64,000 nt of DNA, taken from contig CBFFRP010000216.1 of the NCBI GenBank assembly GCA_965644295.1, forward strand, positions 97,782 through 161,781. Reading direction: 5' to 3'. Source of the stretch: Paraphysomonas bandaiensis. Lineage: Eukaryota > Protista > Chrysophyceae. Below the pieces are notes generated by a model, which ran no database searches, was not told the DNA's origin, and saw nothing but the letters and a program-made list of their open reading frames with translations. Shown one piece after another: positions 26,185 through 35,795 of this stretch (its first letter is position 1; the number at the start of each line of letters is the position of its first letter). The position numbers and the translations under genes are program-made.

Positions 26185-27243
26185 ATGGGTGAGATCAAGC
26201 AAAATGTACGATGGGACGAGTTGTATTTCTTCATTGGTGTAGTGAGCGTCATGGTCAGCTCATGGCTAGTTGGCGCTTTTCCACACTGCTATTGGGTTCA
26301 GCATTGTATTATGATTTTCATATTGCTCATAATTCGCATTTCCCGGTTCACGAGGAAAGGTTACCAATTCTGGCTTCTCGATTACTGCTATGTCATCAAT
26401 TACATGGTGCTTATGTATTACATGCTTAGTGTTGCTGGAGCGTGCCCTTTTCACAAGTATATTTTCCGAATTGTATTTTCTTCTTGTGTAGGACCATTAG
26501 CTATATCTGTGGCAGCATTTCGAAATTCATTGGTGTTTCATTCAGCAGATAATCTGATCATTTTGGCTTTGCATTTCAGCCCGAATATTGCCATTTGGGG
26601 AATGCGTTGGTTTTCTGCCGATTTGGAGCGCGATTTTCCTAATACATTTCATGTATGCGACAATAATCCAACTGATCGACTAAATTTATTTTTTAGTAAT
26701 ACTGATTGTCCTGGAAGTTTTACTGATCTTTATTTATGGCCTGTGTTTGTCTACGCAATTTTATGGGCCACACCATACTATTTATTTTTCTTTATTATTG
26801 GAAAAGAAGCCCTTAGAAAAGGGGGATATTACACTATGTTTGATGACATGAGTTCTAAACCGGCTGTTAAGAAGGTTCTATCTATAGGAGGAGATTGGGG
26901 GAAGGAATTCAAATATATGGTATGTCATGGCTTGGCGGTTTATTTAGTGCTTTTTCTTGGACCAGTGTTGTGGCATAGTTTTATTCTTCATACGGCATAC
27001 TTAGTCTCTATTGTGGGTGTATCCGTTTATAACGGAGGGACGTATTACTTCCGTGTGTTTGCCAAAAAGTACTATAACGAGGCGATGAAAGAAGTTCAAG
27101 ATCACGAACAACAAGTCGAAAAACAAGAACTTGAACTGGCTGATAGATATCTAGGAGAGCACCAAGGATTAAACCCGCTTTCAGCTGTCAATGACGAGAA
27201 TACTGGTGATGATTGCGTCGACGCAGGGCACCCGGAGCCATAA
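26185..27243 (+). CDS. GPC1: Glycerophosphocholine acyltransferase Gpc1-like (DUF2838) membrane protein
   Basis: Motifs WLLDYCY, GPLAISVAAFRNSLVFHS, LHFSP and NGGTYYFRVF; multi-TM; intronless 352 aa. Confidence 0.85.
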   Translation: MGEIKQNVRWDELYFFIGVVSVMVSSWLVGAFPHCYWVQHCIMIFILLIIRISRFTRKGYQFWLLDYCYVINYMVLMYYMLSVAGACPFHKYIFRIVFSSCVGPLAISVAAFRNSLVFHSADNLIILALHFSPNIAIWGMRWFSADLERDFPNTFHVCDNNPTDRLNLFFSNTDCPGSFTDLYLWPVFVYAILWATPYYLFFFIIGKEALRKGGYYTMFDDMSSKPAVKKVLSIGGDWGKEFKYMVCHGLAVYLVLFLGPVLWHSFILHTAYLVSIVGVSVYNGGTYYFRVFAKKYYNEAMKEVQDHEQQVEKQELELADRYLGEHQGLNPLSAVNDENTGDDCVDAGHPEP

Positions 27244-28461
27244 TAGCTATACCTGGTGGAATAGTACAATAAATTCGTAGCAATAGATATGTATATTGAT
27301 AAGTGTATAGAAAAAGTGATTGCAATACTACAATGTATATTTTTTTCTATGAAACGTGCCCGCAATACTTATTTCGTTGTGAGTGATGATATTAATGACG
27401 CCTTGTAATAATACTTTTCAGTACGAAGTGTGAGAGTCTGATGTAACGTGTCCTAATTCGCTGGTGTCGTGTTCTTCTATAAGTCGAAGTCTCTTAATTT
27501 AGGAGCTTCCTAGAATAACTTTGATAAACAACGTTTTTTAAAATATAATTTGAAGACATTATTCGTAAAAGATATGACAATAAATATTCCTTGTGTCAAA
27601 TTGACTACAAACTATATATGTATAAAGGAAACCAGCACCAGCAATAACAGTAGGTAACTTGACCTTATTTCTATTCAGAGGAAAGCTATAATGCTAAACC
27701 TTTGACGTAATTTCGACTTATTCTAATGATAACACAACGCATACACTAACAAGGACATTCAGCAGCATATATTGCTCGCTAATTATGGGGCTCTAACTTC
27801 AGCAATGTTACCGATTTGAGAGATATGTGGGGTGGGAAATATCTCACTACATCAGGTAGATGAGTTTAAAATATAAAATTCGCCCTTATTCATCTGGAGT
27901 AGAGTTTACAATGTACAGTTCACACTGCCTGTAGTTACTGTTTGCATTCTCTCAGTCTTGCGGGTAAATTCTATTATCTCTCAGTAATTCTGATACCGTG
28001 GCCAACAAGAACCATACACTACATCTTATTCCACTTACAGCACAAGCAGGTCAACCATATCGTGCACCCTCGACGAAAAAGTTCAGAGCTACCTGATTGA
28101 TGATCGTAAGTGCAGCTGTGCTCTGCATCTGGCTATCTCCCCTTGCGGTTCATTCGAATGACTTGAACAACACGACTTCAATTAAAAAGCGACTTTTTGG
28201 AATATAAACTGGGGATTTTGCCAACTTGTACGTTGATTGGCTGTGTTCATACTCTACATACTACATATACAAGAGAACGATGCAGCATACAGACATCTAG
28301 ACATGTCATGCATATATACATACAGCATATACTATACGGCAGTTCACACACATACTGCACAGCATAGCAAGTGCATTGGATATCGCCGACGTTGACAGGG
28401 AGCTGCTATCCCACTACACTCTATTCTTCTGTTGCCAACAGTGGAGGTAAAAACGCTTCAT

Positions 28462-30359
28462 ATGGCGCAGTTCACGTCTCATGATGTGTTCGTCTATGTC
28501 GGCGATCTGCACGGACAAATCGGGAAGCTAACTAGTATGTGGTCCAATTGTGTGCACGCACTATCGAAAATAGAAAGATACTCTGAGTGCCCTCTATCAG
28601 TACATGTTATATTTCTTGGAGACTATTGTGATAGAGGCCCTCATACATGTGAAACACTGCAGTTTTTAGTGACCTTAAAGTCTCATCACCCCACTTATAG
28701 TTTCAACTTTATAGCAGGCAACCATGGTGAGAGTAATAGTTATACTGTATCACAGTTATACAATGTATTCATGTATTTGTCATTGCAGATTTTGCTTTCT
28801 TAAAGTTTGTTGTTGTTGATGAAGATCTCTCTCATACATGTGAGGGGTACCATACACACGAAGAATTATACGAAGGAGAAGGGAGCGACTTTATGCATTT
28901 GCAAGGGAAGCGATGGGCCGCTTCAATATTTGAATGGCAAGACTCGATATATCAGTCGGCGACAACCTTTTCTTCTTATGGTGCATCCTATGCTAATAGG
29001 AATGAGCTCTTACAGAATATGCCTGATTCACATATTGAATTTTTGCGAAATATGGACTACATATATGATTTCAATTCTTCAGAGCTTGGTAGAGTAATTT
29101 GCGTTCATGCTGGCTTAGAAGATACATCCGATATTGAAGAGTATATTACTAAACTTAAGACTAAAGACGATAGCGCTGCTCGCCTTCAAGCTTTGTGCGG
29201 TCGCAGTAATGTACTGCCTATCCCATTAGAGTTGCAACAACAGGAGGCTTGGGTGGTGAGTGGACATCACCATCGCTTTGTTGTTAATGGTAAAAGTCGC
29301 CGCCTTGTGATTGATGAGTGTGGAGGAGCTGATAATAGCCCACTGAGCTGTGTTATTATGATGAAAGATTTTTTGCTTCCCTCGCAGGTCGACTCTATCA
29401 TCAATCCAACGAGTTGTAGGGTGAGCTATGTCGGAGAACTACAATCTCCTGATCAATCTGTTACGCTCTTACGTGTGTCAGAATCGGACGATTGGACAAG
29501 TGAAACGGGTGCCTTCCCCCCATTACTGTCGCCGATGCCCAGTTTTGATGACAATGACACAAGACATAGTGCTGCGGGAGGGGATCGCCCCTCCTCTTTG
29601 ATACGCTCAAAGTCTAGTGTATCCACCAGGAGAAAGTATCTATTGGTGGTAGTCTGTGTAAATAGTGGCGATAGTGAGCAACATCTTTGTGTGGAAGAGT
29701 CTGTAAAGCACGCTCATGTTGCGTGTAAGAATGGGGCTGATGGCATTATACTGATGGGCGATGGGGCTAATGCTGATATTCTACTTGCCGCATACGAAGC
29801 GATTCGAGGGCACTATGACGAAATTTTTATTGGAATAAACTTTATGACTTCAATGGACACAGCATTTTACTCCATTCCTCATGATGCTGATGCGATATGG
29901 ACTCTTCAAGGTGTTGATTCCAATGGTGTGCATCCTGACATAACCAGATGCAAGGTGTCTGATATTAAAGTATCTCGCCGGTGGTTGAAAGCGCACTTTG
30001 GTGGCTTTTTAATGGAAACATCTATCCAGGATTTCTCTAGTGACGACTTTTACTTGAATGAATTGGTAGATGAAGCTTCTAAACATTTAGATGTATGTGT
30101 AATATCCGAGTTGAGGGGTGACAGTGTTTCTACGACAGCAGACCGTCTCAAATTTATACATACTATGATGGATGGAAGTCTCCCACTGGCGTTGGTGACT
30201 ACAATCAGCGCAGAATGTATTGATATGTACTTACCTTACGTGAATTACGTTATATTTGGTACCATTCCTATCGAGGGAGTTACTGCTGTTGAAAACCAGT
30301 CGAATAACGCAGCAGCCATCGCACTCATGGCGGAAAAGATACATTCGTTTTTTGCGTAG
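28462..30359 (+). CDS. RLPH (Rhizobiales-like PPP-family) phosphatase fused to a BtpA/SgcQ-like TIM barrel; intron 28727-28788
   Basis: GDLHG, GDYCDRG, GNH|D, HLQGKRWA, HAG, VSGHH and IDECGG. C-terminal KYLLVVV...ACKNGADGIILM...FIGINFM...ADAIW is BtpA-like. Confidence 0.85.
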
Positions 30360-30741
30360 ACGTGCGTAACATAGTAGAGCAGTTCTGTTGTTCTATTATG
30401 TGTTTTTATTTGAAGTGCTGCAATTTATGTCTATCTCTGTGACAAAATGTTTGGAATTAGCAAACATGTATGATTTCTGTTTTCCGGTTCTCCATGTATG
30501 TTTTGTACCTGCGATGCCATAGTTATCGAGGCTATTATCTAGCAAACAAGCAGAACCTAAAAATCACTAATGGTTATGGAGTTATTTGTAGAAATTTATT
30601 GCCGTTTATGGTGAAATAAGGGGATTTCGTCACAGCAGTCAGTAGGATATTTTTTTTGGTTTGAGCACATCACATACGATCAGAAATAGGAAAAACATTT
30701 GTATTCACGTATTCGCAATAGTATTCAACAACAGCTCACAC

Positions 30742-33084: not shown

Positions 33085-35795
33085 ATGGAGATTCCAACAA
33101 AGAATGTGTTGGAGCGACCTAAAAGAACTATCATACCCCCCCAATGGAGAGAGCTCGATCGCAGCTATCTGCAAGATGCTTTAAAACAAGCCCCTAAAAA
33201 GAAATCTCATCATGCGTATTCTAATATATGGCGTAACTACATGAAGAGTTTAAAGCACCTACTTGATTCCTTGAAGAAAAAGATGAAAGATGGCAGCAAC
33301 TCGACTCGCATTACTACAACAAAAAATAAAATTAAGAGTCTGTTAAAAGAGCTGCAAGAAGAGAACAGCAACCATACTCGTTATTTCAAAGAGTTTCAAA
33401 CCACAGGTGATGAATGTGATGTTGATGGTGTGAATTGTTCGAAGTGTGGCAACGATGCTGTTGAAGATGAAAGAGATTTATACTTCTGCGATGCCGAAGG
33501 ATGCTGTCGTGCGTATCACTTAGATTGCTTGGATCCACCTATGTCAGCTAAACATATAAGCACCGATCCTAATGAAGACTGGTTTTGCCGACAATGCAGA
33601 TGTGTTGCCGACTGCTTGGTAATGATAAACGAGAGGTGTGGTACAATGTTTTCCCGAGCAGAAGATGTCTTTTCAGAGGCGGAAGAGAATACAATTTCAA
33701 GTGGGAAGGATTCAAAAGGAGGTACACTTAAAACAATAAAAAATAGTACTAAGCGTTCTAGCAAGAAAGATCCTCAGGAAGACAAGGTAGCCCCGCCGCA
33801 AAAGTCTAAAGCAAGGGATATGAAAAATTCGTCTGGTACTAATGTTGACAAGTCGTTATCAGATGTTACAGAAACAGCAGTAGCTGGGAATGTGACTTGC
33901 AAAACTTCATCAGATGCGAGTTATTTTACATACCCAGATGGCGTGACGCTCACATCATGGGGCAAGCATTATAAGAATATCAACCGACTGCTACTTTCTA
34001 TAGAGAAGTGTAAACATTACGTGGATGTGTACTGCACACAATCGAAGAGCGACTCCGTTGTAATAGTAGATAACTTGGAGCGTGCAGTAAGCGACATCCG
34101 AAAACATAAGTTAGCTGTGCGTGAGACCCTCAAGGAAATTGTAGAGGCTAATAAAGGGCACACGCGGTATGAAGTGCTAGATAACGACGAAGATTCCATA
34201 GATATCATGGAAGTAGACTGCTCGGTGTGTGGGAAGCCCGATAGCGAGACTGAAGACATTTTACTCTGCGATCGGAAAGGTTGTTGTCGTGCATACCATC
34301 CTGGGTGCTTGAACCCCCCACTATCTCAAGATGATGTTAATAGTGATCCTGATGTGGATTGGTTCTGCTGGTCCTGTAGGTGTCTTGCAGACTGTCTTGC
34401 GTTGATTAATGAGTTCAGCGATACCAACTACGAGGATAGTATCGAGGAGGTATTTGCAGAGGCAGTGGCGGACGAGGAGGACAAAGGAGAGGGTGTGCTG
34501 GCAGAACCTTGGGGGGATAGCGAAAGCGAAGATGATGGTGACTATGTGCCCCGCGAAGAACGACTAGCTGGTGATAGCGACGGTAGTGAAGATGGCAAGG
34601 ATGGCAGTGGAGAGGATGACGGTCCTGCACCGAATGACAGCGAAGAGGATGCGACTGAATACCCAGTGGAAGATCACAATGCTACCGAGGAGATTGTGGG
34701 TTCAGAATCGGATTCATCGTCAGAGTCTGCTCTTGACGATGACGCAGAGGACGATCTCGAGTCCGACATATCTGGAGAAGAGGTACATCGATTTCGGCCT
34801 GCGTTAGTATATTTAATCGTGTGTAATAGCTACAAGGACTTATTGATGAAGCGGGAGACGATATTGAGGTTGAATGTTTTTCTAGAAGGGATGAAACCGT
34901 GGACGAAATAGTATGCCAACCAGAAGAAACTGGCCTTATCAGTAGTCGTTTGCGTAGGAAGGTCAATAAGCCATCTGAGTGGAGCTTGCCCGCAGAGTTC
35001 CCACCAATTAACACCCTTTGCCCAGCGGATGTGTACGTAGGCTTTCCAGTAGCCAAAGTGAAAGCAGGCCGAGTGATAATTGGATCCGTTGTTTGCCTGC
35101 CAGGTACAAATATCACTCTGTTTTGAATCATAATATAACTGTAGCATAGGTGACAGCTACAGTAGCAGTTCGGTCGACGAGGTGAAAGAGAGCTTGGTAA
35201 CATCATCATCGAGCAGAGAGTGGCGTGTCGAATACGTAGACCAATCAAGTGCTTGTCTAAAGTGGGATACGTTAAGGTGATATGATTTTGCGTATCTTAC
35301 GTCTAGTTACTTCATTTGCCTCGACAGAGAAAAGTACGAGTGTCGAGTGGACTATGAAAAGCAACTGCGAAAATTCCAGGAGGTACGTATGTATTTAGAA
35401 GATGATATTGATGAAGTATTTTCTTTCCCCAGACGGAAGTAGCAGCAACTGGACCTATCATTGAGAGTATCGAAGAAGGTAATATTATCACTGGAAAGAG
35501 AAAGAAGAAAATTCTAGACTACCAGCAGCTAAATAGAGAGGTGTTTTGTTTTGCTTATAACTACGTATCGAGGATGATGTTGTGTTTTCAGATGTTTGGA
35601 CACCTCAAAGAAGAATCGGACGATGAGGAATTTTCTGATAAACCAATATCTGAAAAGCCAAAAAGAAAGCGCAAAAAAAGAAAGCAATTAGATGAGTTTG
35701 CCCAGCACGAAAGCTCTGATAGAGCTTCTGAAGAAAATGAATCTCACGGTACTGATGGCGCGTCTCAAATATTAGCATCTGATAGTGTAGCCTAG
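33085..35795 (+). CDS. Double PHD-finger chromatin protein (HAT3.1/PRH-type PHD), multi-exon, acidic linker
   Basis: Two PHDs: CSKC...CDAEGCCRAYHLDCLDPP...WFCRQC and CSVC...CDRKGCCRAYHPGCLNPP...WFCWSC. C-terminal KRKKKILDYQQLNRE|MFG. Confidence 0.85.

Follow-up and report, generated by a model that had tools for sequence, protein, structure and literature searches.

A predicted RLPH-type phosphatase fused to a degenerate BtpA/SgcQ-like barrel in the chrysophyte Paraphysomonas bandaiensis

The 64,000-nucleotide stretch of Paraphysomonas bandaiensis DNA analyzed here (hereafter the window; contig CBFFRP010000216.1 of assembly GCA_965644295.1, positions 97,782 to 161,781 of the forward strand) contains a complete gene in which a phosphatase of the RLPH type, within the PPP family, is followed by a C-terminal domain that is homologous to the TIM barrels of the BtpA/SgcQ family. 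The product is a protein of 611 amino acids (aa) encoded by two exons, 28462-28726 and 28789-30359. The features of the gene, in window coordinates, are as follows.

28462-30359, plus strand: complete gene, RLPH phosphatase and barrel, from ATG at 28462 to TAG at 30357-30359
28347..28461, plus strand: 5' untranslated region, minimum extent (the X1 transcript contig begins at 28347), without ATG
28462..28726, plus strand: coding part of exon 1, N-terminal third of the RLPH phosphatase with GDLHG, GDYCDRG and GNH, from matches to Pfam Metallophos and 5vjv
28727..28788, plus strand: intron, 62 nt, GT..AG, with the joint 28725>28788 (cut +1) seen in X1 and X4 contigs
28789..29480, plus strand: phosphatase part of exon 2 with HLQGKRWA, LLQNMPDSH, VHAGLE, SGHHH and IDECGG, from the 5vjv match and the alignment of relatives
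29481..29633, plus strand: Ser/Pro-rich, partly basic linker of ~51 aa, delimited by composition and by the two flanking domain matches
29634..30356, plus strand: predicted BtpA/SgcQ-like (beta-alpha)8 barrel, 241 aa, with a degenerate catalytic face, from homologues, model and residue loss
30357..30359, plus strand: stop codon TAG
30360..30500, plus strand: 3' untranslated region, continuing ~120 nt past 30500 (position 2092 of the X1 contig corresponds to 30500)

The limits 28462-30359, the phosphatase motif set, the linker and the C-terminal domain in the same frame had all been given correctly in an earlier sequence-only reading of the window, which did not mention the intron. The exon 1 frame ends GGC AAC CAT G at 28726, such that the GNHD motif straddles the splice junction (GNH/D); splicing restores the frame and yields GNHD-FAFLKF, where P0002 and P0003, its nearest relatives, read GNHDHAFLKF. 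In public sequencing runs, X1 provides a 2216-nt contig over 28347-28725 and 28788-30500. Because the intron is exactly removed and there is no other gap, this contig is RNA-derived and spans both domains; the sequence-only reading had pointed to transcripts as the means of telling one gene from two, and what they contain is a single spliced contig. The X4 run, filed under another organism code, has the identical joint and overlapping contigs over 29031-29640 and 29612-30500, and X5, a poly-A metatranscriptome, covers parts of exon 2. The X14 run retains the intron stretch and is DNA-like.

The 241 codons of the barrel lie in the same exon and frame as the second part of the phosphatase, with no intervening stop, and the GC content and GC3 (GC content at third codon positions) are equal in the two halves. 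Two genes read as one are excluded by the lack of a stop, the shared exon and the spliced contig over both halves, and the GC content and GC3 of the barrel, which are those of the phosphatase half, rule out its recent acquisition by gene transfer. The linker contains 11 S, 5 P, 6 D and 4 T in 51 aa, and no homologue of it (29481-29633) was detected in sequence searches with exon 2 and with the barrel.

The MMETSP1103 transcriptome, which is labelled Paraphysomonas (chrysophyte), contains a 100% identical peptide, P0001. P0001 begins with MILLSLKF, which requires the same splice junction (CCATG/ATTTTG, the slash marking the joint) and one extra T in cttTCTTaaag; this extra T (window 28789-28805) is found in none of the four runs X1, X4, X5 and X14. 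The resulting frame, which would remove the first 88 aa, reflects either a strain variant or an error of assembly. An X4 contig with a depth of ~7.6 shows an additional 52-nt GT..AG joint within exon 1 (28649-28700) that would shift the frame directly after GDYCDRG and may represent a non-productive isoform. Among the single-nucleotide differences from the window, 28653 A>G (synonymous) occurs in X1 and X14 and lies outside the X4 and X5 coverage, 29759 C>T (synonymous) occurs in all four runs, and 29871 T>A, which replaces Ser with Thr in the barrel, occurs in all four runs and in P0001.

The assignment of the N-terminal half to RLPH-type PPP phosphatases, already made from the letters of the sequence, was borne out by searches against solved structures. 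Exon 1 matches Pfam Metallophos (E 5.6e-8), and its best solved relative is Arabidopsis RLPH2 (5vjv, E 3.1e-16), followed by BSU1 (1e-6); for exon 2, 5vjv is the sole significant solved match (E 2.8e-31 over aa 12-192). The named database matches of the phosphatase half are plant RLPH2 proteins. All expected motifs are present, namely, GDLHG and GDYCDRG in exon 1, GNHD at the junction, and HLQGKRWA, VHAGLE, SGHHH and IDECGG in exon 2. The motifs that define RLPH (Rhilph) phosphatases have been described (Andreeva & Kutuzov 2004, PMC535813), and the sequence displays HAG in place of HGG, a C-terminal GHH (VSGHHH) and MHLQG(K)RWA, and the SAPNY motif is absent from the phosphatase sequence, as the RLPH definition requires. 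The insert motif LxxAxPxxH reads LLQNMPDSH, with Asn in place of Ala; the corresponding sequences are LLSCLPFSH in a paralog from the same genome and LLANIPSSH in P0002. By its intact motifs, this half is an RLPH-type PPP phosphatase that is predicted to be catalytically competent.

Plant Rhilphs have been characterized as single-domain proteins “without N- or C-terminal extensions” (PMC535813); the protein described here carries a C-terminal extension of ~290 aa, and extensions are also found on other protist RLPHs (P0010, P0016 and P0017). The standalone relatives P0002 and P0003, which are of stramenopile type, and the paralog end with ...L(I/L)R(F/I/V)(R/S)S, and the fusion reads ...SVTLLRVSES at this point and continues. 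As a phosphotyrosine phosphatase, AtRLPH2 targets the TDY loop of D-group MAP kinases, and the preference for phosphotyrosine, with a docking pocket for pT-x-pY, is established for AtRLPH2 only (PMC12817480). By analogy, the phosphatase half can be expected to act like the plant enzyme, with a preference for phosphotyrosine.

The identity of the C-terminal domain emerged only through intermediate sequences. Scans of the 241-aa domain against Pfam, NCBIfam and PHROG recovered no family (a match to ThiC with E 0.035 is a chance one), a word-index search with the barrel domain alone gave no match, and a PDB sequence search with the same domain gave only chance matches to collectins. The BtpA models PF03437 and TIGR00259 did not match at E<=1 for the domain or at E<=10 across the whole genome. 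An exhaustive HMMER (phmmer) search of 1.84 billion proteins identified 191 relatives at E<=1e-3, 16 of them at E<=1e-10, the best besides P0001 being P0018 (2.8e-20). We aligned the barrel with 59 of these matches (alignment A1, 60 sequences); 57 of the 60 match PF03437 (BtpA; best 2.8e-13) and 51 match TIGR00259 (BtpA/SgcQ). In public databases, the relatives are named “BtpA/SgcQ family protein,” “predicted TIM-barrel enzyme” or “adenine phosphoribosyltransferase.”

Predicted structure points in the same direction. An AlphaFold (AF2) model built on A1 contains eight strands and eight helices (pLDDT 89.6, pTM 0.88), and a Foldseek search of the PDB with this model, a check proposed in the sequence-only reading, retrieved the TIM barrels PcrB/GGGPS, ribulose-phosphate epimerase (RPE), KGPDC, DHPS and TrpA at E ~1e-8; the best shape matches in the atlas are BtpA clusters (TM 0.79-0.80). 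The 30 nearest atlas clusters by language-model features are all BtpA (score 0.91, 189 of 256 features in common). A search of the PDB with the A1 profile gave CutC and other phosphate-binding barrels as the best matches and no BtpA member among the solved structures. The C-terminal domain is thus, as the sequence-only reading had proposed, a BtpA/SgcQ barrel homologue; this identification is based on transitive homology and predicted fold, and the domain itself lies below the cut-off of the family models. In the phylogenetic tree, the barrel belongs to a group of 16 mostly protist or giant-virus-like sequences (SH-aLRT 96). The contigs of its closest relatives (P0019 on L002, L003 and L004, and the P0018 contig) have a GC content of 27.6%, carry genes densely on both strands, encode FNIP repeats, leucine-rich repeats and collagen plus Peptidase_S74 proteins, and look giant-virus-like.

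The barrel has diverged from its family in a specific manner. Among the 29 columns that are conserved in A1 (at least 85% identical), it retains 14, compared with a family median of 97%, and only P0092 is equally poor. The replaced positions are the following.

Position 8: His to Cys (H8C), end of β1
Position 91: Asp to Leu (D91L), β4
Position 128: Lys to Glu (K128E), after β5
Positions 157, 159, 163 and 164: T157I, G159E, T163D and G164S, β6 loop and start of α6
Positions 188, 189 and 190: A188V, S189T and G190T, β7 loop
Position 195: N195C, short helix after β7

In the model, all 11 replaced positions map to strand C-termini or βα loops. These elements form the catalytic, phosphate-binding face of TIM barrels. 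The segments ISELRG, LALVTTI and IFGTI, rightly singled out from the letters as eroded, are the β6, β7 and β8 loops, in which the 59 relatives display the motifs T-S-G..T-G, A-S-G and V-A-T-G at 92-98% conservation. The retained residues are mainly structural (G34, A35, D36, G37, L40, R58, G67, N69, W89, F122-G124 and D153). Three pocket positions have turned acidic (E128, E159 and D163), which, together with the loss of the His, Asp and Lys residues, argues against the phosphate-ester binding that is usual in the family. The same erosion is apparent when the domain is aligned with hmmalign to a profile built without it, and the residues in question are retained in the other fusion proteins of the family (zinc-finger, RING, ADPRibase-Mn and LMW-PTP types). 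The terminal branch of the barrel measures 1.38, ~1.7x the median of 0.83. Selective loss of the active site in a fold that is predicted to be kept appears as the signature of a pseudoenzyme domain, not of general decay. Because almost all family-conserved residues of the catalytic face are lost, the barrel is likely non-catalytic; most likely, it no longer carries out the chemistry of the family, nor does it grip phosphate in the usual way.

The pairing of an RLPH with a barrel was found only in this genome and in the single Paraphysomonas transcriptome that yielded P0001. A word-index search with exon 2 (candidates of 287-913 aa) recovered both halves in P0001 only, the exhaustive search showed the pairing in no other protein among the 150 best of the 191 matches, and neither a profile search with alignment A3 (213-677 aa) nor a metagenome scan produced a further RLPH-barrel fusion. 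The sequence-only reading had known of no such fusion, and our searches agree in finding none outside Paraphysomonas; the searches being capped, absence of the fusion from other organisms is likely, if not proven. The genome encodes one barrel and two RLPHs: profile searches of the whole genome with PF03437 and A1 detected no second barrel. The second RLPH is a standalone paralog on the minus strand (G000:C216:58483-59181, within L006, G000:C216:56983-60681), ~39 kb before the window start. It is 43% identical, is encoded by multiple exons and ends ...VRMLKISSSC-stop, without a barrel. Around the fusion gene, the flanking open reading frames encode a DUF2838 protein (26185-27243, plus strand, E 6e-25) and a protein carrying multiple PHD fingers (33085-34911, plus strand), ordinary eukaryotic genes with no evident link to the phosphatase gene.

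Elsewhere, barrels of this family are joined to a variety of domains. In P0021 (L008:8001-9164), the barrel follows a NADAR domain; in P0022, P0023 and P0166, a RanBP2-type zinc finger; in P0037 and P0175 (Eutreptiella), a RING domain; and in P0078, a GNAT domain. P0133 (L009:265-2274, 669 aa) consists of an intact barrel followed by an ADPRibase-Mn-like metallophosphoesterase with similarity (E 1.3e-18) to 2nxf, the zebrafish ADP-ribose/CDP-alcohol diphosphatase (PMC3407115); its contig is eukaryote-like (picoeukaryote-like), with a GC content of 58% and neighbors encoding WW and ephrin-receptor-like domains. One atlas cluster combines a phosphoribosyltransferase (PRTase) with BtpA. Two long, repetitive proteins with many short matches, P0029 and P0134, were dismissed as spurious.

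For bacteria, we compiled 80 barrel loci (L011-L090) by a profile search of genome contigs with a tighter alignment, A4. Five of these encode fusions, in either order, of an intact barrel with an LMW-PTP-like (PF01451), LMW-PTP/ArsC-like domain with an intact CX5RS loop, CEWNEGRS (L012:5995-7230, L024:939-2165, L030:5839-7197, L040:2685-4205 and L051:5261-6628); the hosts are metagenome-assembled genomes of Proteobacteria, Gemmatimonadota, Pirellulales, Deltaproteobacteria and Myxococcales. In 10 of the 80 loci, the gene immediately preceding that of the barrel, in the same orientation, encodes a PfkB-family carbohydrate or nucleoside kinase (e.g. L062:5143-5979). No partner is present in most of the 80 loci; the most frequent, at 10 loci each, are the PfkB kinase and one large-protein family.

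The RLPH family shares some of these modules. The RLPH homologue P0017 combines NADAR, a zinc ribbon (RanBP-type finger), zf-UBP and RLPH domains, and its NADAR domain is 42% identical (E 1e-40) to that of the barrel protein P0021, the two proteins coming from two different protists; a similar RanBP2-type zinc finger is found on both RLPH and barrel proteins. NADAR domains are ADP-ribosyl hydrolases (PMC11543638, PMC11125620), and in the biosynthesis of altemicidin, SbzO, which is BtpA-like, assists in stripping the ADP-ribosyl group from an intermediate derived from NAD (PMC13518217). The barrel thus recurs with phosphoesterases and with enzymes of ADP-ribose and ribose-phosphate, and it has partner modules in common with RLPH. 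The sequence-only reading had regarded the fusion as a potential Rosetta-stone clue to BtpA function; the fusions of intact barrels to LMW-PTP-like, ADPRibase-Mn-like and NADAR domains support that idea as a lead, although they do not demonstrate a function.

Our preferred explanation, held with moderate confidence, is that an active RLPH-type PPP phosphatase is tethered to a C-terminal barrel through a linker of ~50 aa that is flexible and rich in Ser, and that the barrel would serve in cis as a non-catalytic module, either by docking of partners or substrates or by gating of the phosphatase. The analysis establishes the gene model, the transcript, the homology of both halves, the predicted fold, the residue loss and the rarity of the fusion; the loss of activity, the substrate class and the regulatory or docking role are what we infer in this scheme. 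PPP phosphatases with regulatory domains in cis include PP5 (TPR), PPEF/PP7 (EF-hands), calcineurin (autoinhibitory tail) and BSU1 (Kelch).

Several points weigh against this explanation. No member of the barrel subfamily has a known activity, such that the “lost active site” is judged from conservation alone. The high pLDDT of the model is owed partly to the family alignment. The database searches and the metagenome scan revealed no orthologue in a second species, which leaves the strength of selection (the ratio of nonsynonymous to synonymous substitution rates, dN/dS) not measurable for either barrel or linker. Finally, the shifted start of P0001 and the 52-nt splice suggest that some transcripts may not encode the full phosphatase.

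Among the alternatives, the one that survives best, albeit an unlikely one, casts the barrel, as the sequence-only reading did, as a ligand sensor that binds a small molecule, perhaps not a phosphate ester, and signals its occupancy to the phosphatase. The retention of the fold in the model and the moderate branch length would fit a pocket that was remodelled, not collapsed, and the relatives of the barrel are tied to NADAR, ADPRibase-Mn-like, PRTase and PfkB kinase partners. However, the phosphate-gripping loops and the His/Asp/Lys triad have all been replaced, three of these positions by acidic residues, and there are no orthologues that could show a newly conserved pocket.

Because of the domain network, that is, the common NADAR subfamily, the RanBP2-type finger and the ADPRibase-Mn-like, LMW-PTP-like, PRTase and RLPH fusions, a broader scheme can be envisaged, in which RLPHs and BtpA-like barrels belong to one protist pathway for ADP-ribose-derived phospho-sugars, possibly tied to ubiquitin signalling. 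Under this scheme, which we consider rather doubtful, the substrate of intact barrels would be an ADP-ribose or ribose-phosphate compound, its phosphate would be taken off by the partner esterases, and the Paraphysomonas barrel would be a reader or docking domain of the pathway.

It is improbable that the barrel is a relic of an ancestral bifunctional fusion, drifting without a role after the loss of its function. Half of the conserved columns are gone, the fusion is limited to one genus in the databases searched and a standalone RLPH paralog is present, all in line with such a history; yet, the frame has stayed open over 241 codons with its structural residues retained, the model is confident, the branch is just ~1.7x the median, and the losses cluster on the catalytic face instead of being spread evenly. 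A bifunctional metabolic enzyme, in which a barrel with a changed but real activity makes a small-molecule product that RLPH, not acting on protein, dephosphorylates, is quite improbable, notwithstanding fusions of the barrel family with three phosphoesterase folds that are unrelated to one another (LMW-PTP-like in 5 of the 80 bacterial loci and ADPRibase-Mn-like in P0133, both with intact barrels, and RLPH here), the PfkB kinase gene directly upstream in 10 of 80 loci and the part of SbzO in ADP-ribosyl removal (PMC13518217), given that the conserved barrel residues kept in the other fusions are lost here and that RLPH2 is a characterized protein tyrosine phosphatase (PMC12817480).

Plants have few true tyrosine phosphatases, and RLPH2 is among them. 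In earlier descriptions, RLPHs consisted of the catalytic domain alone and occurred only in land plants; here, a stramenopile RLPH carries an appended domain and coexists with a standalone paralog. The locus thus presents a natural case for studying the targeting or control of RLPH enzymes. The phosphatase belongs to a known family, and its pairing with a BtpA-like barrel is so far unique; the domain network is of higher interest than the fusion itself. To our knowledge, no biochemical function has been settled for BtpA/SgcQ barrels. The repeated fusions to three phosphoesterase folds, to NADAR and to PRTase, along with the PfkB neighbor, suggest the hypothesis that the BtpA/SgcQ family acts on ribose-phosphate or ADP-ribose compounds, and bacterial members that are easy to express would allow this to be tested. 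The Paraphysomonas barrel illustrates cleanly how an enzyme domain can become a probable pseudoenzyme once fused.

Compared with known systems, the phosphatase half resembles Arabidopsis RLPH2 in the metal-binding motifs, HAG for HGG, MHLQG(R/K)RWA and the LxxAxPxxH insert, and differs from it in the ~290 extra C-terminal residues and in an identity of just ~38%. The C-terminal half is akin to the BtpA/SgcQ family (PF03437, TIGR00259) in its predicted (beta-alpha)8 barrel of the ribulose-phosphate-binding type, whereas it reaches neither model and is devoid of the near-invariant His, Asp, Lys, TSG..TG, ASG and Asn. The bacterial LMW-PTP fusions likewise combine this barrel family with a phosphatase in one chain, in either order; in contrast to the Paraphysomonas protein, they are prokaryotic, contain a Cys-based phosphatase fold and have an intact barrel. 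In P0133, as here, a barrel and a binuclear metallophosphoesterase are part of one eukaryotic protein, but the barrel is N-terminal and intact, and the esterase is a member of the ADP-ribose/CDP-alcohol diphosphatase family, not of PPP/RLPH. Our working analogy is with the cis-regulated PPPs, which similarly append a non-catalytic domain to a PPP core; in the Paraphysomonas protein, the appended domain is a degenerate metabolic-enzyme barrel, with regulation proposed only by analogy.

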